The notes under the pieces were generated by a model that saw only the letters and a program-made list of their open reading frames with translations, was not told where the DNA came from and did not search any database. Shown in pieces: positions 15,365-57,229 of a stretch of 64,000 nucleotides of DNA. Origin of the DNA: Octopus sinensis (lineage: Eukaryota). How positions within the stretch are numbered: the stretch's first letter is position 1; every line of letters starts with the position of its first letter. The translations under genes were made by a program, and so were the position numbers. The stretch lies in contig NC_043000.1 of assembly GCF_006345805.1 (NCBI RefSeq), forward strand, positions 75,950,001-76,014,000. Direction: 5' to 3'.

Positions 15365-18300
15365 TTTATTTTTATTTTATTTTATTTTATTTTATCTAGT
15401 TTCAGCTAACGAGCTGTGGCCATGCTGGGGCACCGCCATTCGGTATTGCTACGTGATTTTACTTCACGAATGCATTTTAGCAATTGACATTTGGTGTATG
15501 AGAGAGTTTGATGCAGCTGCCCTCATCTGCACCTCCTGTCGTGAAGTTGGTTCATCTGGGACACCTGACAGGAAGAGATCCAGTTTTATTTTAAAGACAT
15601 CTGCATCCACCCCATGCAGGTCTCTCAGGTCCTTCGGGAGGATATTGAAGAGCTGTGGACCTCTGAAGCCCAGGCTATCACAGTATCTTGTCCTACATCT
15701 TGATGGCAAATTTGGAGTCCTTGGCACTATGCAGTGACGCCCAGTTCTAGTATTTGTAACTCTCGATGCCTAAGTTTGGGACAAGTCCTTCCAGGATCTT
15801 CCGGATGTATATTATGGCATATCTTTCTCGCCTACGCTCTAAGGGATAGAGTCTTAATCTCTTGAGTCTTTCCCAATAGCTTATATGCTGCACAGAGGCT
15901 ATCTTCTTCGTGTAGCTTCGTTAGATCGCCTCAAGTTCTGTGATTAATTTGACACTGGTTGGTGACCATAGCTGAAAGCAATAGTCAAAGTGGCTTAGGA
16001 CAAGTGTCCTCCAGAGGGCCATCATGGTTTCCTGGTCTCTTGTTCTAAAAGCTCTAAGAATCCATCCGGTCAGCCACCTACATTTCATTGCCAATTTAGC
16101 AACATGCACATGAAAGGTTGCATCATTACTTATGTAAATACCCAGGTCTCGCACTGATTGTGCCTCTGGGATTGCAATCCCTCCAGGTCCAGTGTATTTA
16201 TTGGGTATTGCATTTAGCTTTGCATGCTGATAGCATAAAGCTTGAAACTTTTCAGCATTGAACTGCATGCTATTCTTTTCAGCCCACTTGTACATTTTGT
16301 CCAGGTCACATTGCAGGTGCATAGCGTCTTCTGGGTCCTGTATTACCTGTGAAACTTTTGTATCATCTGCATAACTTGTGATCGTGACTCTCTGCAGTTG
16401 TTTCAGCACCCAGGCATAGTGTTGTAGGAGCTGAGTTAGGCAGCTTCTTCCTGTTCGGAAACCATGTTGGGTGTCAGGCAGAAAGTTATTTTCTTCAAGG
16501 AAGGTGATTAGTTTCCTTCTGACTATTCTGACTGATGTGTGAGGTCAGAGAGATAGGTCTGTAATTCTTGGCCTCCGCTCTGCTACCACCTTTATGAATA
16601 GGGCATATTTTACCCTCCTTCAGTTTTCTTGTAAGTTTGCCAGCTGCAAGGATGCTCTGAAAGAGGAGCTGCAGTGGTCTTGCTAGAACTCTCTTACATA
16701 CTTTTAGAAGGATTGCTTGGAATCCATCGGGGCCAGTAACTGAGTTTGGGTTCATTTCATCTATAGCCCTTATTACATCGTCTTCCTTTATATTGATGTA
16801 ATCAATCATCGTTGACTCTGATTTTATATCTGCAGTGGTGAAGAAGTCAGTTGGATTGCTGACTTGAAAATGCCCTAGGGGTGGAGTGAAAATACTTTTG
16901 AATTGCTCATTTAGTATTTCACTTATCCTCATTGGATTTCCTGTGAGTGTTCCATCTTTTTCAAGGAGTGGCCCAATCCTACAGTGCACCGTGGCTGTTT
17001 CTTTGGCAAACTTGTAGAAAGCTCTGGGGTTAGATTTTATGTTGTCTATAGCCCAGGCTTCTTTGTCTGCTCTTTCTTTTTCATGGGAGAGTTGCAGACA
17101 TTTTTCAATTTCCAGCAGTTTTATTTTCAGGCACTGCTTTCAATTGTTTGTTTAGGCGATTTGAAACTTTTGTACGCCGTCTCATAAGAATTTTCCTCTC
17201 TCTGAGGATTTTGTTCTTGTGTACAGTGGCCTTTCTCTCTGGGACACATTTGTAGCATATGGCTTGCATCACAGACATGAATTGTTGAAGTTTCATGTCG
17301 ATGTCTGGTGAGGAGAGACATTTAGGCCAGTTTTGTTTGAAGATCTCTTTCTCAATTTGTTTCCAGTTTGCCTTATGGAAGTTCAAGCTGGAAAGATTCT
17401 GAGAGTTTCTTGTAGGCTGCATGTCCATGCTTTCCTTTGGCCCATACATGGTCAACTCTACCATGTTGTGATCCGAGAGTAGTGTCAGTGTCACTTTCAC
17501 ATTATGGATGAGATCCATATTACTTGTGAAGCAGAGATCCAGTATGTTACCTGCCCTGGTTAGTTGGAGTATTATTTGCTCCATGTAGAGAGTGTTGATG
17601 AGGTTCAGGAGGGACCTCGCCTGTCCTCGTTCGCATCGTGTCATTCCTGGGAGAGAAAGGCCCTCGGGCCATCTGACATTGGGCAGATTGAAGTCTCCCA
17701 TAAGAAGTACACTTGTGTTGTTCTAATGTGACTAGAACTTCTATTTTTGTAAGGCAGTCTTCAAACTTGCCTATATGACTTAGAGCATCTGGAGGGCGAT
17801 ATGTAGCACATATAACTACACTGAGTTGCCTTATATGTACAATTAGTGTGTCACACACCGAATTTGAGTATGACAAAAGGACCTGGGGTGTGAGGTCCTC
17901 ACGGATGTACATAGCAACTCCACCATGACTCCTTTCTTTTCTGTCGGTCCGTAATACAACATACTGTGGTATGTGCATTTCCGCATCTGCTATATCCGGT
18001 TTCAGGTGTGTTTCCGTAAGTGCTATGCATAAGGCTTGATTACATGCAACAAGGTCTCTCAGTCCTCTGATGTTCAGTAGGAGCATCGAGGTGATGTGGG
18101 TGTTGTTGCCAGTGGTGTCCCCCTTGGGTCTATTTGCTGTGGTGGTCTTGTGTATTGTGGATAGTCCTATCTGTGAGTTTGAGTTTGATGGAGCCAGATT
18201 AGCTGCTGTACAATCTTTTGTGCCATGCACAAAAAAGATTCTTGTTTAGCATCTGCCCTTTCAATAACATGTTGATGGTTTGTAGCAAGAACTACATCTG

Positions 18301-19024
18301 CGTACCTCCGTTTTGGGGCAAGAGGTGCGTAGTCCTTTCCTTTTCCTTTTGGCAGTTGGTTTCCGCCCTGTTTCATGTTTATGTGGCAGGGTCTTTGGTG
18401 TACAAAACGGCAGCCTGCACCTTCCTCTCCATGCCAGCAGACACCTTTCACGTAGAATTTATACATTCGTGTGTGCTGTCTCTTTCTATCTTTTTTGGTA
18501 TATGGATAGTCAGGTTTGCTTCTATCCTTGACTGTTTCATCTTTTGGTTTTGTTTGAGTTTTAGTTTTTCCTTCTTTGGCTGTTTCATCTTTTGTTTTTC
18601 TTTTAGTTTTTCCTTCTTTTACTTCTTTTTTGGCTCTTTCATCTCCGTGGTTTTGCCTTTTGATGCTGGTAGGGGCACTTGCACTTGGGTTTATTTCCTG
18701 GGCAGGTTTCTCTCTTGAATCTTCTTTGTTGTCCTGGGTGTCTACCAAGTGGGTGTGACATCATTCATCTGCATCCGTGCCTCCCTCCTTGTAATCTTTG
18801 CTTTTTTCGTTGTCAAAGATGGCATCAAGAGTCTTGATATGGGATCTAATGAATGCATAGGAGCGTATAAACACCTGCTTCTTTCGCTCTATCTGTGCTA
18901 ACATCCTTGTGTAACCATTGCTCTTCAGCGTAGCTGTAATTATGTTGTTCGGATTATCTCCATCAGCACAGTACCATGCTCTCAAAAACAATTCCAATTC
19001 CATGCTCCTCCAGGTTCTGGACAT
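15365..19024 (-). mobile_element. Near full-length CR1-like (L2/CR1 group) LINE, inactivated: ORF1, APE endonuclease, reverse transcriptase
   Basis: APE: LLLNIRGL, IALTETHL, RSHGGVAMYI, GDFNLP, GNILDLCFT, SDHNMV. RT: GPDG, NYRPISLTSHIS, QHGFRTGRSCLTQLL, SYADDTKV, VRDLGI. C-terminus GPQLFNILPKDLR...AASNSL. Tail of (taaaa)n type. Many frameshifts. Confidence 0.9.
18167..19024 (-). pseudogene. LINE ORF1 with one in-frame TGA: Myb/SANT-like N-terminus, Lys-rich linker, degenerate CCCH-like zinc finger
   Basis: ORFs 18761-19024 and 18167-18748 are in the same frame, separated by a single TGA. Motifs: W..MELELFLRAW...LKSNGYTR..AQIERK and YKFYVKGVCWHGEEGAGCRFVHQRPC. Confidence 0.55.
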
Positions 19025-43580: not shown

Positions 43581-44790
43581 ACGAATACCATAATGCACCA
43601 AGAATTATGGGTATAAATATAAATTTATAATCAGTCTAAAGATGCTACATGTCTTGAAGCAGTTATCTACAAATATTCTCTTTAGAAGAGATGTTCATCA
43701 ATGTCGGGTTGTTTACCAGTATGAATGCAAAAGTAAGTTTTTCTTGTGCAAATAATTGTATCAGATCTTTTACGTTTGCATTTTCGCAGCTGAGTTGAAA
43801 TTTTGCTTACACTGGAAATAGATTAGGGATTTCTGCAATAAAATAAATACTACTAGGAAATAACTCGGCCTAAAAATTGAATGGGTAACTCTGTTGACTA
43901 TCATTCCAATAAAGAAATTTAAATTTATAAATTAAACAACAAAATTGTGATAGATATATGTTTTATTTATTTTTTTAATTATTTTTTCAGTATCACGATT
44001 ATTGAAATTATCAAAATAAATTAACAGTTCTTCATCCGTACTGTCGTTTCTGCAATAAAATAAATTTGCAAGAAATTAATATATTTATCGGATTGGGTAT
44101 ACACAGTGAATTTCAAATTTTAAAAAGTTAGTATATCTAAGTACAATATAAAATTTAAATTTCAAAAAGTGTACATTAGATTAAATGTCACATGATTATA
44201 CAACAAAGTATTAAAAATTCATCAGAGCCTCAGATTTTAAAGCCCAGTTCACACACTCATAAACTATATACAGTGTCACTCATATCCTGAAACGTGACAC
44301 TGTATATAGGATATTTTACAAATATATCTCCAAATGGTCCATATTACTATTTAAACAGTTGAATATATACATAAACATGAATATTTGTAACATTAAGAGC
44401 AATGTCGTGCAAAACATGTATTAGCGATTTGACATAAGTGAAAATTTGGCATAAATGAAAATTGAAAGTTAACTATTTACTTCCATGTATATTATTAAAT
44501 GTATGCATTTATAAGAAAAAAAAACTTAGAAGACAACAATTGCTTTCTTCGAGACATTTCTAAAACATTAAAATGAACAAGTTCGATTGATGATTGAAAA
44601 GTGATCTCTAGTGCCATTTGGTTCATTGCATGAATCCAGTAGTTTGATAACATTCCAGTTTGTATGCTAAATACCATCTAATTGCTGGATGATTATTTTC
44701 TGTTTAATATGAGAAATAAAATAGGGGTTACAAAGGGTAAAGAATGAATTAAATTTGTTACGTTAGGGATAGTGAAACACTAACAAAACA

Positions 44791-46970
44791 TTAATAAAAC
44801 ACTTTACTCCCCAGACTATAACAATCATATTTGGTACACTTGACCTTCCCATTTGAACAGTCACAAAAATTGCATTTATCATGAGTCATGAACATTTCTC
44901 CATCTTCCTAAGATTTTCCATAATACTGGCATGTCGGGGGACAATACTTTTTAGTACAAGCTACTTAACCAAACTGTCCACATCTACAAGTATTGCAGCC
45001 ATCTTTGAATGTTTCACCGACAGAATAAGATTTTCCTTTGTATATGTAGGGCTTACTGCATAAATTTTGTTCACAATCCACTCTTCCATCGGAGGTGCAC
45101 TGACATTTGTTGCAATCATTATACCATACAGAACCAATTTCATAAAGCTTACCGTTGTAATTACAGGAACAATGAATTTTTTGCAGCTAACCTCACCATT
45201 ATATTGACAAGTACAAGTATTGCAGACATCTTTGAATTGAGCTCCGAAATCATAAACTCTATTTTTGTAAGTGCAAGTACATGTATTTGTCGTGCAGTCT
45301 ACGCTACCATCGGCTTTGCAAGTGCATGTATTATAGCCATTTTTAAATGTTGTACCAATTTGGTAGGTGTTTCTATAGATTCTTAGAACACTGTACTATA
45401 CCGCTCGGTAAACATTCACACTGATTACAATCTTCATGAAATTTATTGTTAATGTGATAAATTTGTCCTTTACATGTGCATTTACATGGCTTGCCTGTAC
45501 AATCAACTTCTCCATTGTATAGACATTTACAAGTATTGTAATCATCGTTAAATACTGCTCCGATATAATAAACCATATTTTTGTAAGCACAAGTACACAG
45601 ATTTGTTGTGCAGTCTACAGTACCATTACTGTGCACGTATTACAATCCTTTTTAAATGTAATACCTATTTTGTAGGTGTTTCCATTGTACATACAGTTAC
45701 ATGGGTTACTAGTACAGCTTACTTTACCGTTCTCTTCACGCGTACATGTATTACAACCCTGTTTAAATGATTGACCTACACTATATATCTGGTTGTTATA
45801 AGTACATTTACAAACGTTCGTAGAACGTATCCAATTGATAAACATTGGCATTGGTTGCAATCTTCCGAAAATTTATCAGCAATACGATAAGTTTGTCCTT
45901 TATGTGTACATCCACATGGTTTATTTGTGCACTCAACTTGTCCGTTATGTTCACATTTAAAAGTATTGCAATCATCATTAAATTGTGCTCCGAAATTATA
46001 AACTCTTTTATTGTAAGTGCAGGTACATTGATTTGTGGTACAATCTACAGTACCATCGGCTTTGCATGTGCACGTATTACAGTCCTTTCCAAATGTATTA
46101 CCTATTTCGTAGGTGTTTCCATTGTATATACAGATACATGGTTTATTTGTACAGCTTACTCTACCGTTCACTTCACACGTACATGTATTACAACCCTGTC
46201 TAAATGATTGACCTACGTTATAAAGTTGGTTGTTGTAAGTACATTTGCAAACGTTGGTAGAACATTGAACGTAGCCAGTTGATAAACATTGGCATTGGTT
46301 GCAATCTTCCGAAAATTTATCAGCAATTCGATAAGTTTGTCCTTTATGTGTACATCCACATGGTTTATTTGTGCACTCAGCTTGTCCGTTATGTTCACAT
46401 TTACAAGTGTTTCAATCATCGTTGAATTGTGCTCCAAAATCATAAATCCTTAATTTTTTAAGTACAGGCACATCTATTTGTTGTGCAGCCTACAGTACCA
46501 TAAGCTTTGCATGTGCACGTATTACAATCCTTTCTACATGTAGTACCTATTTGGTAGGTGTTTCCATTGTATGTACATTTACATGGTTTGTTAGAGCACT
46601 GCACAATACCGCTTCTTAAGCATTCACATTGGTTACAGTCATTACTAAATCTTTGTCCAACTCGATAAGTCTGTCCTTGGTAAGTACATTGACAGATTTT
46701 CTTTGTACATTCTAACTGACCGTTGCCTCTACAATAGCAAGTGTTACAATCCCCTTCAAATTTCTGGCCCACATTTAATACTTTTCCTCTGAAGTAACAC
46801 TTACAAATGTTCTTTGTACATTTAACCTGACCGTTACTTAAACATTCGCATGTATTGCAATCATCAGTGAAAGTTTGGCCGTTTTGATATCGTACATTTT
46901 TATAATAACATCCGCATCTATCGCTGTTACACTGTTCCTGTAGTTTGGCAAGTGCAAGTCTTACAGCCAT
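44791..46970 (-). pseudogene. Tandem array of about 20 six-cysteine pacifastin/VWC-like modules (37 aa, 111 bp), disrupted
   Basis: Repeating xCxYxGxxYxxGxxFxxDCNxCxCxxxGxVxCTxxxC across ORFs 46458-46970, 45776-46171, 45615-45860, 45373-45636 and 44961-45143; final frame ends at TAA 44791-44793; multiple stops and frameshifts. Confidence 0.85.
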
Positions 46971-47139
46971 CTGTAACTTTTGTTAGAGACTGTGAACAAT
47001 AGAGTGCAACCCCTCCACTCCTATTATATGAAACCTATAGCTTCAAAATATGTTGTTCACAAGAACTCAGCTTTGTCACACAACATGAAAATTAATATAC
47101 TGATAGCAGACTTAGGATAATGAACAACGTGTCCCCACT

Positions 47140-47870
47140 ATGCGAAACCTATGAAATGAAAAAAACATATACAGAACTGCATGCACCGCATGCAGTTCTC
47201 TGGATATGATAAGAAAGATAGGGTTCCAGTATACAGGGGTGCTAGTAAGAAATTAGATAACATTATACTTAATGATACAAGTGGTACTTGCCCTAGATAT
47301 AGAAACAAAGACTGGAATAGGATACAAAGAACTTGTGACAAAGCAAATTGGGCGAACATGTGGTATAAAACCGAAGAATATCAAAGAGTGATGTTTATAG
47401 AGGCCACAGCCCATAGAACTAGCCCGTAGATTTAGGAAAGCTCTGAAGAAAACCAAAATCAACATTAAGATTGTTGAAAACCAGGGAACTCCATCAGTTC
47501 ACAACTATGTAGGACGTACCCCTTTGAGAATACCATATGCATCAATGATAACTGCATGACATGTAGGATTAGCCCTGGCATTAACTGTAGAACTCGAAAT
47601 GTAGTTTACACCATAAGATGCATAAAAGGTGCTTGTAAAGACATGAACATGACATACATAGGAGGGACATCTAGGAGCATTGCGGAACAACTAAATGAAA
47701 ATTCGAGACAATATGACGACAAAAAGCAGTCCTCCGTACTCTACCAGCATACAAAGGACCAACATGAAGGTAACCTGGGTCAACTTGACATCTGCATCTT
47801 ATCCAAGCACCCAAAGAACACTCAGACAAATACGGGAGTAAGTCCTCATAAATGAAGCTTCCCCTATACT
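47140..47870 (+). mobile_element. Penelope-like element, GIY-YIG endonuclease relic
   Basis: CRTRNVVYTIRC...C.....YIGGTSRSIAEQLNE...SVLYQHTKDQHEG...ILSKHP is a PLE GIY-YIG pattern; upstream VPVYR and VMFIEAT fragments fit the PLE linker. Confidence 0.75.
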
Positions 47871-47954
47871 AAATAGGAAATATACATAGCAGATATCATA
47901 TTCCCATACATACAGTTTACATAGGTAGAGTAGAATAGTTAGTGTGCTATTATG

Positions 47955-48041
47955 TAGATGTATGTATGTATGTATGTATGTATGTATGTATGTATGTATG
48001 TATGTATGTATGTATGTATATGTGTGTGTGTGTGTGGGTGG

Positions 48042-48097
<56 letters not shown>

Positions 48098-48137
48098 GTT
48101 GATAGATGTATGTATGTGTGTTTGGATAGGTGTATGA

Positions 48138-48195
<58 letters not shown>

Positions 48196-48690
48196 ATGTA
48201 TGTCAGCATATGGATATGAATGTAAACAGATCAACATACAGACGGAGAGTTACATAGCTTATATGAACAAACAAGCACACATACGTAAATGAAGACTGAA
48301 ACATTACCATATATACACACACACTTTATTTCACACAAGGACACATATGGAAATACACGTCCACACATATAGAGATACACATCCATACATACAAATAGGG
48401 TACATAGTTGCAAAACACACACACACACACACACTCAGACATGCACACACAAGGAGACAGAGGTACACACAAACATATACAAACACACACACACACATAC
48501 ATAAAAACACACAAACATGGCCTCGCAAACACATGGATATGCAGTATACATACATACAAATGTATACACATAAATAGATACATATGCACACACACACATA
48601 CACGCATACTAACACATGCGTACATACATACATGCATGAATGTATAGGCACACACACACACACACACACTGATCCACTCTCATACGCACA
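47955..48690. repeat. Compound (TATG)n/(TA)n/(CA)n low-complexity tract
   Basis: Directly visible; source of several spurious ORFs. Confidence 0.9.
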
Positions 48691-48922
48691 AACAAACAAA
48701 AAAGAACGCAGTGCGCGTAACGGACAGTAAAAACTATTGAAAAGGTTACAAGACGCAACGAAAATTTTACAAAAATAAAAAAAGAAAGAACTGGAAATTT
48801 TACCGGTGAGTGTGTTAAATTATAAGGCACCCAAGCACAAGAGAATATACTTTATTTATTTATGTGAAAATATGTGAACATGCACATATACGTGTATGTA
48901 TTATGCATGTGCATGTGTATAT

Positions 48923-49234: not shown

Positions 49235-49912
49235 CTTATTTTATGAGTCTGAGGCCATGCTGGTGCACTGCCTTTCCTGCATCCGAGGGTTTTTCCAGTA
49301 TTGCTTCTGGTGAAGTAGCGAGTTGGATGTTGCAGCTCTTCTTTGTGCCTCCTGCGGCGGCATGGTGGGTTCATCCGGTATTGCAGATAAAAAACTGTCT
49401 AGACGTTTTTTGAAGACTTCCATATCTACATCTTACAGATCCTTGATGTTCTCAGGTAGGGCATTAAAAATTTGTGATCCCTTGAATCCCAAGCTATTAC
49501 AATGGTTCGTATCCTCGATGAAGATGGGACCTTTGGTACTGTGCAGTACCGTCCAGTTCGGGGATTGTTGTAGATTTCTATTCCGAAAATTGGAGCTAGA
49601 CCCTCCATTATTTTCCATATGGAAAAAGTAGAGTGCGAGTTCCTTCAACCTCTCCCAGTAGCCCATGTGTTTTGCTGAGTCTGTCTTCTTTGTGTAGTGG
49701 CATTGCATCGCCACTAGTTCTCACAATTAATTTTACACTCTGTGGGGACCACAGTTGGGAGCAGTAGACCAGACGACTGATTACAAAGGTTCTCCAAAAC
49801 AGAAGCATTGTCTCTGTTCATGGTCCTGAAGGATATAAAGATCCAATCTGCCACCCACCTGCATAGTGTTGCTATCTGAACAATGTGCACATGGAAAGTT
49901 GCATCGTTGCTC
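49235..49912 (-). mobile_element. CR1-like LINE 3' fragment, same family as 15365-19024
   Basis: SNDATFHVHI, SRLVYCSQLWSP, GSQIFNALPENIKDL, VFKKRLDSFLSAIPDEP...AATSNSLLHQ; tail ggcagtgcaccagcatggcc. Confidence 0.85.
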
Positions 49913-49945: not shown

Positions 49946-50360
49946 TGTATGTATGTATGTATGTATGTATGTATGTATGTATGTATGTATGTATGTATAT
50001 AACGGGAAGCTTACGAAAATAAACAAAAGACGAAGGTAGGTGGAGTACAAACAAACAATTGTATTAGTGTGGCGCTCAAGAATAGAAATAAAACAAGTCT
50101 TTTACGTTTCGAGCCTACGCTCTTCAACAGAAAGATACACAGAAAAGAAACACGGAGAGAAACAAATACATACATACATATATATGTATGTATGTAGTAT
50201 ATATATATATATGTGTGTATGTATGTATATATATATATATAATATATATATATATATAATATATAATATATATATATACTTATATATATATACTTATATA
50301 TATGTATATACATATATATATATGTATATATATATATATACTTATATGTATATATGTATG

Positions 50361-50416
<56 letters not shown>

Positions 50417-50714
50417 TACATATATGTTATATATATATACTTATATGTATGTATATATATATATTATACATATGTATGTGTATACATATGTGTGAAAGAT
50501 ACACAGAAAAGAAACACGGAGAGAAACAAATACATACATACATATATATGTATGTATGTAGTATATATATATATGTGTGTTTATGTATGTATATATATAT
50601 TATAATATATATATATTATATATACTTATATATATATATACTTATATATATGTATATACATATGTATATGTATGTATATTATTATATATATATACCTATA
50701 TGTATATATGTATG

Positions 50715-50763
<49 letters not shown>

Positions 50764-50850
50764 TATACTTATATATATATATATATATATATACTTATAT
50801 GTATGTATATATATATATATACATATGTATGTGTATACATATGTGTGATT
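49915..50850. repeat. TA-rich tract with a duplicated spacer of about 90 bp
   Basis: gaaagatacacagaaaagaaacacggagagaaacaaatacatac at about 50130 and 50494. Confidence 0.85.
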
Positions 50851-51990
50851 ATTCATTTTTATACTTTTTGTTATCTAAGTATATGTTTTTAAAAATATTT
50901 TTTAATTTTCATTTATGATTTGGTTTATATCTATTATTGTTTGAATTGCATAATAGTGGTTTTTCTCTTATTTATATATTATATATTATATATTCATATT
51001 GTGAAATTTGATTGAATGCTAAATTGAATTTTCCCTGTAAGTTTGGAGTTATACTCGCTAATATTATTATTATTATTATATATGTGTGTATAAATATATA
51101 TATATATAAGTTCAGCAAAATTTAGATTTAAATGAATATGGTACTTAAGTTAGATGAATATGGTACTTAAGTTAGAATATGGTAATTAAGTAATTACTTC
51201 TCTTCATAAAAATAAATCACCTTCTACTAAACCTATGAAAACCTTTCTTCTTGATTACTCCTCTTCCAGTTTTCCTATCATATATATTTGACCCCTAATA
51301 TATTCACTTGATTAATAAGACTTTTGTCCTCAGTTAATGAGTATTATGCCTACTCATAATAAGTGATAGATTTTTCTCCAAAATGAATAAATATTTATAA
51401 TTTCTCCTTTAATCCAACGTATCAAAATATTCAAAATCTACCAGCTAAGTATAAAGTTGATGTATATAAGTATAAAAGAATCTCTGTACTCTCTATAAGT
51501 GGTCACTGTGACCATTTGACATTGACCTAGTTTTCCTAATACAAAATCTGTTTGCCAAATAGTAGTATACAGCCTCTGTAGCATTACAACCCTCTCTTTA
51601 CCTTAATTTCTTTATATAGAACTTTGACATCTATTTCACCCCTGTTTCTATTAATAGAAAATCTTTCTTGTCTCCTTTCAATTGATCATTCTTCCTAAAC
51701 CTTCTAGTAGTTCAAAACAACTGAATATTCTGAATATTCTTCAGTCAGTTGATAAACTCTACTACCTTAATGTTCTTTAAATTTAAATCGACATCTTTGT
51801 CTATATATCTACCTTCTCTATAATGTTATCAATTGATATGAAAATTATGTATTAATGGAAAACCTCTATTAATGGCTGATGATTGCTCAACATTTTAAAC
51901 CTGCTGTAATACTTACAACATTTAATAAAATGATGTAGCGTGTAATGATCGTACCAAATCACTGAAGTTATTCTTGTTGCTTATTTTGAT

Positions 51991-52833: not shown

Positions 52834-54370
52834 TTGTTCGCTATGGATTCGGTGGAGGCACGAACTGGTAGCCAGACTGGAGGGGAAGAGATCTCGCTTG
52901 CCTTGATTGTAGAGATGTTGAGGGGCCAGATTACGCAGACAAACGCATTCTTGGAAAGGATGGATAAGAGGCGACAGGGCCTGTGGGCAGATCAGCAAGA
53001 GCTTGAGGTTGCGGATGGGTCAGCTTTGGAGGATCGGTGTTGGACCGGGGATAGTGACGGTCCTGTGTGCGGAGATTGCCCGTCAAATGAAGTGGAAAGT
53101 GAAGAGTGTGGGTCGGCGGAACCCTGTGATGTTGGACCTGAAGTGGATGTTGCGGAAACTGAAGCAGATGTTGCTGAGTCTGATGCTGAGAAGCCCGAAG
53201 AGCCTGCTGAGTGTGTGTTGTCTGCTGCTGTTGTTCCGTGTCTGGAGACTTTGGCATCTTGACCCCTGTCTTTCGGGACTCAGGACGAAGAGCTTGTGAA
53301 GTCTGGAGCTAATGTCACTGAGTCCAAGGAGCCGGCTGTGTGTGTGGTGGCCGCTGCGGTTGATGTTCCGTGTCTGAATCCTTTGGTGTCTGGAACCCTG
53401 TCTCTCGAGGTTCAGAGGGACTGTATGGTGCCCACTGTGGAGAGGCCACAGGTGTGGATGGACTGTCGGACGAACGTGCGTTCTGGGAAGCCTTCGGTGC
53501 AGAAGCTGGTAACAAGGAGGACCAAGCCTAGTGGTGAGGCGAGACGGCGGCGAACGGTGGTAGGACCACAGAGGACGGGAAGACTGCTCCAGTGTTGGGT
53601 GAGCTTTGTGGTTGATGGCTGCTTGGGGCTGGCGAAGCCCGACAGGCAGTACATAGCGAAAGCTCAAGTGAGGGTCGGGTGGACCCTGGTAGAGGCAGAA
53701 GCTGACAGAGCGCTGGCTGGGTCAGCCGATCTCTTGGAAGTGGCACAGGTGATTTGTAGAGGACAAATCAAGGAATCGTGCCAGATGGTGAACCAGCGGC
53801 AGGGCCAGTTCTGCCAGTACAGTAATACAGTCGAAGGAGTTGGTGGTCTACCGATGCAGTTGCGGAGGCGGTCCGCAGGGAGTCGCTGGTGCTTGGTGGC
53901 ACTCGGATGTTGCGGAAGAAGCAACCGTTGGTGAAAAACGCAGGACGTTGGTCGCATGGACCCAGTTCGGCTGCGAAAATCGAGGAGGTATCGGCGACAG
54001 GGAACAGTGGAAAGGCGGAACGGTCTCTGGTCGTCGGCCATTATGGCGCAGAACGAAGACGGCACAGCAAGGTGCTACGTGGGCTGTAGAGCGCTGAGGG
54101 AGGTGGTCACTGTGAAAGATTGGCCGGATCCTGCTTGTGTGAGGGAGCTAAGGAACTTCCTCGGACGGTGCGCCTATTGTAGGCGGCTCGTGGGAAGCCT
54201 CGTGGTCTTGGCGGAGCCGTTACCCAAGCCGCAGAGGGAAGATGCTAACTTGTGGCCGGTGGTGAAGTGGTGGCCGTGGGAAGCGAGACCTCCGGAAGAG
54301 AAACCACCCAAAGAGACCTCCAGTTCCTGGAGCATCTGCTGGAGCTCGCCCTCGGAGGTACGGGTTTAGT
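52834..54370 (+). mobile_element. Degenerate internal region of a Gypsy-type LTR element (gag-like start plus RT/RNase H connector relic)
   Basis: GC-rich, long ORFs. Acidic gag-like ORF 52834-53262. VTVKDWPDPACVRELRNFLGRCAYCRRLVGSLVVLAEPL matches the Gypsy WP.P..V.ELRSFLG.C.YYRRF connector. No YxDD core or integrase seen. Confidence 0.7.
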
Positions 54371-55754: not shown

Positions 55755-57229
55755 TATATGCACGCGCGCACGCACACACATATATAATTTTTTAAAGTTA
55801 TCTCTACAGATTTTCTATAGAAATTAGAACCAACACTGAAAAGTGTCTTAGGTAACACTGATATTTTAAATAACATGCATGTTGAAGTTAGTTGTAATAA
55901 CACTAGTGTTGATAAATTGTATGAAATAACTTTAAAATGAGAAAGAAATGAATTATGAATAGCGATAAAATTTACTTACAGCTGTAGCTGTTCACATAAG
56001 AAATAGCTACTATTACCGGTAGCACTTGGTACAGCATGATGACCAATTGGTTTATCTTTTCTTTCTGCCTCTTAAGGACTGGTGAGTGTTGTTTTTCCGA
56101 AACAAGGACAGGCTTGACAAACGTCTCAAATAAACGCTTGGTTGGGCCATTTTACTTATGATAAAAACAATCGTATCAGAACTGTTAAATAATTACGTGG
56201 TTAAATAATTACGTGGTTAAATAATCACGTGTCAATCAATGGTTAAATAATTACATGGTTAAATAATCACGTGTCAATCAATGTATTTATAAACAACAAT
56301 GCTATTAACAATATAATTTTTTAAGAATAAGTAATATTCATTGATCCTGAAAATGCAAATGACTCCCAACAGGTTTTCATTTAATTGCTGAGAATATATT
56401 CTGGTCATTAAATGTCCGCTCCCAACGATAACAAAAATAATTTACCGCAGGTTCACATGTTTTACCATGCTATTTTTTCTCTTGGCGAAATTCTTTTATC
56501 TTTTTTAATTGTTTTGTACACAGGACACATTTACACCAACATTAATTCTAAGTAATCTGTATTCTGATATTCAAATCAAATATATATTTTCTTACAGACA
56601 ATTCATTCCTATATTGTCTTTACAATTTGTGACATTTATTTTTTTTTCCACTCCCTCCATGCGGCAGCTCAGGAAAATTTCGGCCAGAAAACTATGAAGA
56701 CGGGTACACTTTTATATAAGAATGAAATCTGAGAAATGAGTTTTAAATGTATTTATTATACAAATAAATAAATTCGAATGTCAGTTTTTAATGTAATTCT
56801 AAAGTAGCAATAGATAAAGATAATGGAACACAAAAGCAATTCTTCTGTTTCGGTGTTTTGCCGTAAAACAAAGGAAGATATCTTCGAGTCAGATTTTCGT
56901 AACATCATTTAATCATAGAATTCCGTAGACAGGTCTTGATCATCAGCGGCTTGAGAAAAACTCGTTTACAGCCCACAATTTGCTACAAATTGTTGTAACG
57001 CTTACTGGCAGTGTTATGATATTTGAAACAGTTTGAAGAATTCAACGAAGGGATCTCTGTGGATTAAAAAGTAACCAGTATGATCAATGAATTCAAAATG
57101 CATGACTTCCGCTCAACTTGACGCATTTCAAATTGTTTAAATTCAACTAAAATGTCTTTGAGTTCATGAATGTTGATTTTCGGACTTGAAGAAGGAAAGG
57201 CTCTTCATGATATTAGTTTCTTACTAAAA

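Follow-up and report, generated by a model that had tools for sequence, protein, structure and literature searches.

A probable unprocessed pseudogene from a family of pacifastin-like module arrays in Octopus sinensis

The minus strand of a 64,000-nt stretch of the Octopus sinensis genome (NCBI RefSeq assembly GCF_006345805.1, contig NC_043000.1, positions 75,950,001 to 76,014,000; hereafter the window, in whose own numbering positions are given) holds, between 46971 and 44791, a broken series of small cysteine-rich modules that resemble pacifastin protease inhibitors. What is this array: a working gene in a faulty assembly, a part of a mobile element, or the remains of a gene, and if the last, of which gene? 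The feature is very probably an unprocessed pseudogene of a two-exon O. sinensis family of pacifastin-like arrays, duplicated from a neighbour 51-62 kb away, and the window copy makes no protein.

Architecture of the array and its intact twin

Three-frame translation revealed 20 cores of the CNxCxC type on the minus strand, between 46965 and 44874, with a spacing of 111 nt (37 aa) wherever the array is undisturbed. The modules follow the pattern C-x16-C-N-x-C-x-C-x3-G-x3-C-[TS]-x3-C plus one linker residue, i.e., 37 residues with six cysteines, and they abut without introns; in the intact paralog, the array is stop-free over 2.2 kb. The initial annotation had described about 20 consecutive six-cysteine modules of 37 residues free of introns, and this agrees with the 20 cores, one of them partial. 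It had counted 15 residues between the first two cysteines, where there are 16. The methionine codon at 46970, with which its coordinates begin, is no start: it is read out of frame, right where the homology with the paralog sets in (46971), so that the first module is partial. The proposed cycle of four module types was recovered by Tandem Repeats Finder (period 444 bp, 2.6 copies, 84% match, score 1562), and together with module typing this places at 45456-46589 on the minus strand a higher-order repeat whose 444-bp unit comprises the four 37-aa types A, B, C and D. The order of types is A-B-C-D, A-B-C-D, A-B-C and A-B, the third D having gone with a 128-nt deletion.

The nearest relative, which we call the twin (L002), lies on the same strand at C4:76,057,348-76,059,543, is 95% identical to the query and has a stop-free frame of 731 aa with 19 modules. 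In all intact copies a polypyrimidine-tttacag acceptor directly precedes the first module and the C-terminal tail is conserved, and the array is therefore one large terminal exon. Its remnant in the window (44791-46971, minus strand; 20 pacifastin-like or half-VWC cores, the first partial) was delimited by reading frames, alignment to the paralog and Pfam matches, and it ends with the original stop codon at 44793-44791. A 3' flank or untranslated region (UTR) common to the paralog follows at 44346-44790 on the same strand, where blastn aligned paralog positions 76056905-76058734 with window 44346-46142; the blocks after the stop are 86-94% identical between the two.

Exon 1 and exon 2 were handled separately. 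A fuzzy search with the signal peptide of the RefSeq protein P0127 located exon 1 of the twin at C4:76,066,259-76,066,202, 6.7 kb upstream of the big exon; it starts with an ATG, encodes a hydrophobic core and ends in phase 1 before a GT donor. Earlier candidates for this exon, from upstream blastn of the twin against a C10 paralog and from a crude signal-peptide scan, had turned out to be repeat-derived blocks or otherwise false. The window contains a corresponding relic at 55980-56037 on the minus strand (ATG, 19 signal-peptide codons and one further nucleotide, phase 1), recognized by its match to P0127 and by alignment to the twin, with a GTAAGT donor after it at 55979-55974. The relic and exon 1 of the twin are 85% identical over about 200 nt including the 5' UTR, and blastn and alignment extend the homology over the 5' UTR and upstream region at 56038-56536, also on the minus strand (paralog 76066178-76066349 against window 55956-56139, 75.5%; paralog 76066590-76066853 against window 56266-56536, 71%). 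The extent first given for this feature thus suits the array but is too short for the gene, since the relic of the signal-peptide exon reaches 56037-55980.

In its gene structure, the subfamily has a signal-peptide exon that a phase-1 intron, 6.7 kb long in the twin, separates from a single giant exon. As we picture it, family members would encode their signal peptide in the short exon 1 and 16 to 29 or more abutting 37-aa modules, each with three predicted disulfides, in the single large terminal exon, and the product of the twin should be a bead chain of about 81 kDa, rod-like and secreted. The window copy very probably arose by a tandem duplication with the same-strand gene that is now 51-62 kb away. 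It later lost the splice acceptor of the big exon and the ~3.8 modules with which that exon began, the break lying at the present end of a dispersed repeat, and after this truncation frameshifts, stops and cysteine losses accumulated.

Lesions, transcripts and exchange among copies

Alignment of the window copy to the twin starts at nucleotide 421 of the coding sequence (cds) of the latter, which corresponds to window 46971. The first 420 nt of the big exon (~3.8 modules) and the splice acceptor are gone from the window copy; a sensitive blastn search of the whole window found the missing 420 nt nowhere else. In their place stands the end of a dispersed repeat (46975-47900, probably reaching further; no strand assigned), identified by a DNA search of the own genome and by read depth. 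The remainder of the exon carries at least six frame-breaking indels and at least five nonsense codons, both counts being lower bounds. The indels comprise -5 at 46935/46934, +1 at 46453, -7 at 45827/45826, a further -7 between the cores at 45755 and 45540, and -1 at 45182/45181, in addition to the loss of 128 nt between the cores at 45429 and 45335 that took out a D module. The nonsense codons lie at 46460-46458, 46414-46412, 45375-45373, 44967-44965 and 44910-44908. Five cysteines have been replaced, in the cores at 45970 (C>F), 45755 (C>R), 45540 and 45335 (both C>Y) and at the first cysteine of the module near 44997 (C>Y). The earlier statement that this copy is decayed is borne out, and the combination of an exon 1 relic, a 9-kb intron remnant, a truncated exon 2 and these lesions is that of an unprocessed pseudogene.

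Could the apparent lesions be errors of a long-read assembly that mask a working gene? Some paralogs do show single homopolymer frameshifts that are possible errors (L014 near its exon start), and the -5 indel at 46934 and the -7 indel at 45826, for which no exact contig from the DNA run is listed (none over 46507-46971 or 45815-46016), are known only from the assembly; these two indels count against our interpretation. However, exact, short-read-type contigs of the DNA run reproduce window-specific sequence at 44300-44655, 44700-45124, 45146-45720 and 46229-46506 and span the +1 and -1 shifts and several of the stops, which means that most lesions are not assembly errors. There are, moreover, five nonsense substitutions and five cysteine losses, and homopolymer errors produce neither a deletion of 128 nt nor a repeat in the place of 420 nt and the acceptor; a working gene at this locus is very improbable. 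Still less credible, to the point of being almost certainly wrong, is that the array is the cargo or a part of a transposable element. A high-copy repeat does adjoin the array at 46975, where the repeat terminus gave 2,114 first-look candidates in the own genome, and depth in the DNA run drops from 5,000-36,000 over the repeat to about 24-250 on the single-copy flank and at the array's 3' end. The copies of the repeat, however, start at 46975 and exclude the array (of the 40 copies scored, which share 87-90% identity, nearly all begin at query base 4, i.e., window 46975), and copies of the array are confined to a few gene clusters, with conserved splice sites and a signal-peptide exon. The suspicion that the array might be a part of a known transposon was thus checked, and the transposon only adjoins it.

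Transcript evidence points to the twin. In three RNA-like runs, contigs cover 45823-46971, and every listed difference from the window is the base of the twin (diagnostic positions 45960, 46007, 46127, 46134, 46170, 46171, 46175, 46178, 46540, 46548, 46588 and 46882); the contigs contain the CACTG of the twin that the window lacks, and their extension beyond 46971 is identical with the sequence of the twin at C4:76,059,124. The RNA nature of these runs is an automatic guess, and in an RNA-like run (X7) a single window-specific contig, of depth 2.2, covers 44690-44930, two points that weigh against a silent pseudogene beside an expressed twin. The depth over the gene in the RNA-like runs is, however, tens to thousands against 0-40 over the adjacent repeat, the reverse of the DNA run, which supports their being transcriptomes, and the contig of depth 2.2 hints at either trace transcription of the window copy or carry-over of DNA. 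The twin is expressed, and the window copy is at best trace-transcribed. A contig of run X1 on 46503-46971 shows 20 differences from the window without matching the twin either, and run X11 has similar differences at 46774/46783; because these differences fit neither sequence, there is therefore a further close paralog or allele, partly expressed, outside the fetched loci.

The window copy and the twin diverge in a mosaic fashion: by 3.8% over cds 421-1569 (20 synonymous and 22 non-synonymous differences and 2 stops), by 8.4% over cds 1577-1754 and by 16.1% over cds 1803-2196. Around exon 1 the figure is about 15-25%, and the intron cannot be aligned. The 1.15-kb tract of low divergence corresponds to window 45830-46971; synonymous differences are about threefold rarer in it, and the 3' part of the window copy is closer to a C10 paralog than to the twin. 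From these alignments, exchange among the paralogs is likely: array length would shift by unequal crossing-over between 444-bp units, from which a varying number of modules among paralogs is expected, and paralogs would swap sequence by gene conversion. Does the dead copy, then, still matter, through low transcription or as a conversion partner that gives module variants to its expressed twin or receives them? The three levels of divergence (3.8%, 16.1% and about 15-25%), the affinity of the 3' part to the C10 paralog and the window-specific contig in an RNA-like run speak for it, but the mosaic may as well stem from conversion of the 3' end of the twin by a third copy, and DNA carry-over could account for a depth of 2.2. 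We regard a continuing role of the dead copy as improbable, and likewise doubt that pseudogene and live twin still trade 444-bp units by gene conversion or unequal exchange; if they did, decayed copies would store module variants on which a secreted, fast-evolving inhibitor array, possibly of the salivary gland, could draw. As a pseudogene, the window copy carries little weight by itself, being one more decayed member of a birth-and-death gene family. The turnover of repeat units and the mosaic paralogs nevertheless provide material for asking how cephalopods diversify their secreted cysteine-knot arrays, some of which have been reported from the venom (posterior salivary) glands.

Module class and predicted fold

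The open pieces of the broken array were searched separately. On the two longest of them, Pacifastin_I (PF05375; Pfam cut-off 27.9) scored 69.7 and 84.9 bits and VWC (PF00093; cut-off 27.6) scored 45.9 and 60.8 bits. The intact twin reached 293.5 bits for Pacifastin_I, and each Pacifastin_I score is a sum over several modules. Both families named for this array beforehand are thus found above their cut-offs. FnI_RECK reached 42.9 bits on the first piece (cut-off 30). Across 95 unique modules of intact paralogs, the six cysteines do not vary, and from the second cysteine on the pacifastin core is well kept, with N in 79, G in 88 and T or S in 72 of the 95. The first cysteine spacing is 16, against 9-12 in the Pacifastin_I pattern C-x(9-12)-C-N-x-C-x-C-x(2-3)-G-x(3-6)-C-T-x3-C. 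In that family the disulfides link C1-C4, C2-C6 and C3-C5, and the P1 residue for canonical serine-protease inhibition stands between Cys5 and Cys6.

Structure prediction explains this difference. AlphaFold models of four modules and of a single module (predicted local distance difference test scores of 88.2 and 89.1) agree on a fold of five strands, in which a two-strand hairpin (residues 2-4 and 7-9) precedes a three-strand core sheet, and it is because of this extra hairpin that the first loop is 16 rather than 9-12 residues long. A Foldseek search with the single module superposed residues 11-37 on pacifastin inhibitors at a root-mean-square deviation of 0.9-2.0 A over 28-32 columns with 41-52% identity (template modelling (TM) score 0.55-0.76 on the target, probability 1.00; expect value (E) only 0.01-0.1, as the domain is tiny). 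The whole module superposed on VWC subdomain 1, matching the E modules of VWF and MUC2 and the VWC domains of CCN3 and collagen IIA over 33-37 columns, mostly 36, with TM scores of 0.72-0.82. A profile search of the PDB with 86 modules gave the same division, NEL/NELL2, mucins and VWF being matched over positions 1-37 and pacifastins only over 11-37. For the four-module model, the top Foldseek matches were pairs of fibronectin type I (FnI) modules (TM score 0.43-0.52 on the target, 26% identity). In terms of these models, the module is a pacifastin core preceded by the N-terminal hairpin of VWC subdomain 1, without subdomain 2.

A class with this composition has been described. The pacifastin-like class termed 'ancestral' (PMC13388995; Sci Rep 2026) is glycine-rich, occurs in multidomain matrix-associated proteins and has linkers unsuited to processing; it is abundant in Mollusca (n=109) and also found in bacteria and fungi. 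The octopus modules belong to this class, having the N-terminal beta-hairpin before the core, a tandem arrangement without processing linkers and a signal peptide. As in the mollusc members of the class, the domains stand in tandem in multidomain secreted proteins, with linkers that do not serve proteolytic processing; the octopus subfamily differs in that one exon takes up 16 to 29 or more modules, joined by linkers of one residue, in its higher-order repeat of four (elsewhere two) modules, and in that the window copy is a pseudogene. The arthropod pacifastins (PF05375; locust SGPI-1/2 and PMP-C/D2, crayfish light chain) share the CNxCxC...G...CT...C core, but the octopus modules have the longer first loop, lack dibasic processing linkers and mostly carry Thr or Asn at the P1-equivalent position. 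With the VWC and E modules (PF00093; NEL/NELL2, CCN3, collagen IIA, MUC2, VWF) the likeness extends to the whole 37-aa module (36 columns, at which TM is 0.78-0.82; profile E 1e-6 to 1e-4). A VWC domain, however, has ten cysteines in two subdomains, the first with CxxCxC and the second with CCxxC, and the octopus module comprises subdomain 1 only (profile positions 1-37/42 of 57), without subdomain 2 and its CC...C motif (cysteines 7-10). FnI pairs likewise form rods of tandem five-strand modules stapled by disulfides, but an FnI module has two disulfides (four cysteines) in about 45 residues, whereas the octopus module has six invariant cysteines, with three predicted disulfides, in 37 residues and a pacifastin-type cysteine pattern.

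The gene family and its possible function

A six-frame search of the genome assembly (2.72 Gb, 13,516 contigs) with a 174-aa open piece yielded more than 160 matches at about 20 loci: the window copy (C4 75.995 Mb), the twin (C4 76.057 Mb), C4 78.62-79.06 Mb, C10 60.21-60.33 Mb and C1 165.61 Mb, with fragments on C28 and C11. Open frames at about half of these loci span from 600 to over 1,100 aa, and several loci are broken. Module counts of 16, 19 and 29 or more were found among the paralogs, with a higher-order repeat of four or two modules. Intact homologues thus exist in the same genome, the nearest being 95% identical with a 731-aa frame, and in other molluscs as well. The suggestion that the family is lineage-specific fails for the module class, which extends to Mollusca, bacteria and fungi, and may hold for the linker-free single-exon subfamily, which from the sequence comparisons looks octopus-restricted: the best matches outside it are 34-37% identical. 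Protein collections searched with the expressed 19-module twin returned nothing above 37% identity, and a word-based search of proteins, for which a 259-aa piece was the query, turned up only six weak relatives and no named salivary-gland pacifastin. The single-exon, linker-free subfamily is accordingly poorly represented in the collections searched. It could conceivably have originated as a retrocopy. The module class, its richness in molluscs and the automatic RefSeq name of a family member (see below) were already known, and the find is real but ordinary.

That family member, RefSeq P0127 (135 aa, 'serine protease inhibitor I/II-like [Octopus sinensis]'), is a paralog from the C10 cluster and the only public protein we found for the single-exon subfamily. 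It shares with the twin the signal peptide and the first three modules (77% identity to the N-terminus of the latter), but the model ends after three modules; the window copy has no usable model. P0127 ends in out-of-frame residues exactly where L003 (C10:60326252-60329725) shifts frame, and L003 is either a pseudogene too or has an assembly indel at this point. L014 (C10:60275544-60278921) has an open frame of 1,126 aa with 29 modules in about six higher-order repeat units; its frameshift, in an A-run just past the exon start, could be a long-read homopolymer error. A far longer relative, L015 (C4:78615001-78625000), shows open frames of 917 and at least 642 aa in adjacent frames and is built of a two-module (74-aa) higher-order repeat in many near-identical copies.

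The Pfam matches, the signal-peptide exon and the intact homologues uphold the initial annotation in its view of an internally expanded, multi-domain family of secreted proteins or inhibitors, and we infer that the family is an extracellular multivalent binder. What it binds is harder to say. Judged by sequence, a subset of the modules may act together as a many-headed canonical serine-protease inhibitor, a role that we favour over a matrix role, though at somewhat less than an even chance. True inhibitors underlie both the best-scoring Pfam model and the solved structures nearest to the core (41-52% identity), most modules retain C-T at P3-P2, and 'pacifastin' groups are listed in octopus salivary-gland proteomes, in line with the transcripts that the initial annotation had mentioned for coleoids: proteomics of O. 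vulgaris salivary glands reported three such groups with signal peptides, whose best matches include locust SGP1 and an O. bimaculoides 'kielin/chordin-like' protein (PMC7693380). The competing explanation, that the members are structural, matrix or adhesive bead-chain rods and not protease inhibitors, is a distinct possibility, if not a probable one. Several observations count against inhibition and fit a matrix or binding role equally well or better. The P1-equivalent residue in the 95 modules is T in 27, N in 26, K and Q in 10 each, and R and S in 6 each, so that Lys or Arg stands there in only 16, and variability in the reactive loop does not exceed that of the remaining surface. The dibasic processing sites found between the domains of insect pacifastin precursors are as a rule absent between the modules of the twin (one-residue linkers at 14 of 18 junctions; 5 dibasic pairs in 724 aa), and locust-style processing is thereby ruled out. 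The tandem-module models resemble FnI-pair rods. In favour of inhibition, on the other hand, the pacifastin light chain of crayfish is likewise an array that does not undergo processing. A matrix role would further agree with the variation of repeat number by the higher-order repeat, with the placing of the hairpin-bearing class in multidomain matrix-associated proteins (PMC13388995), with kielin/chordin-like multi-VWC proteins being the most abundant in the eggcase matrix of the Argonaut octopus, and with a product that has 6.6% Tyr and no N-glycosylation sequons, the depletion of sequons itself not being offered as evidence. Binding roles other than these two are conceivable but rather unlikely.

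With regard to sequons, the products of L002, L005, L008, L010 and L014 contain 9-11% Asn and 14-17% Ser+Thr yet 0-2 N-x-S/T sequons, against 7-15 in shuffled versions, although shuffling makes a poor null where a protein is built of repeats. An exception is the copy at C4:78.62 Mb, with QNCTC in each repeat. The scarcity of sequons may or may not reflect avoidance of N-glycosylation.

Among the neighbouring features, the open reading frames (ORFs) at 47556-47855 (plus strand), 49433-49711 and 52834-53259, near the truncation, match no Pfam family; the first of them has some apparent resemblance to the GIY-YIG nuclease motif. An ORF run at 15921-18748 (minus strand) resembles, by eye only, a retrotransposon endonuclease with reverse transcriptase. 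TA/TG/CA microsatellites and low-complexity tracts occupy 47940-48700 and 50000-50920, within the former intron of the gene, and GC content falls to 22% at 50-52 kb of the window.

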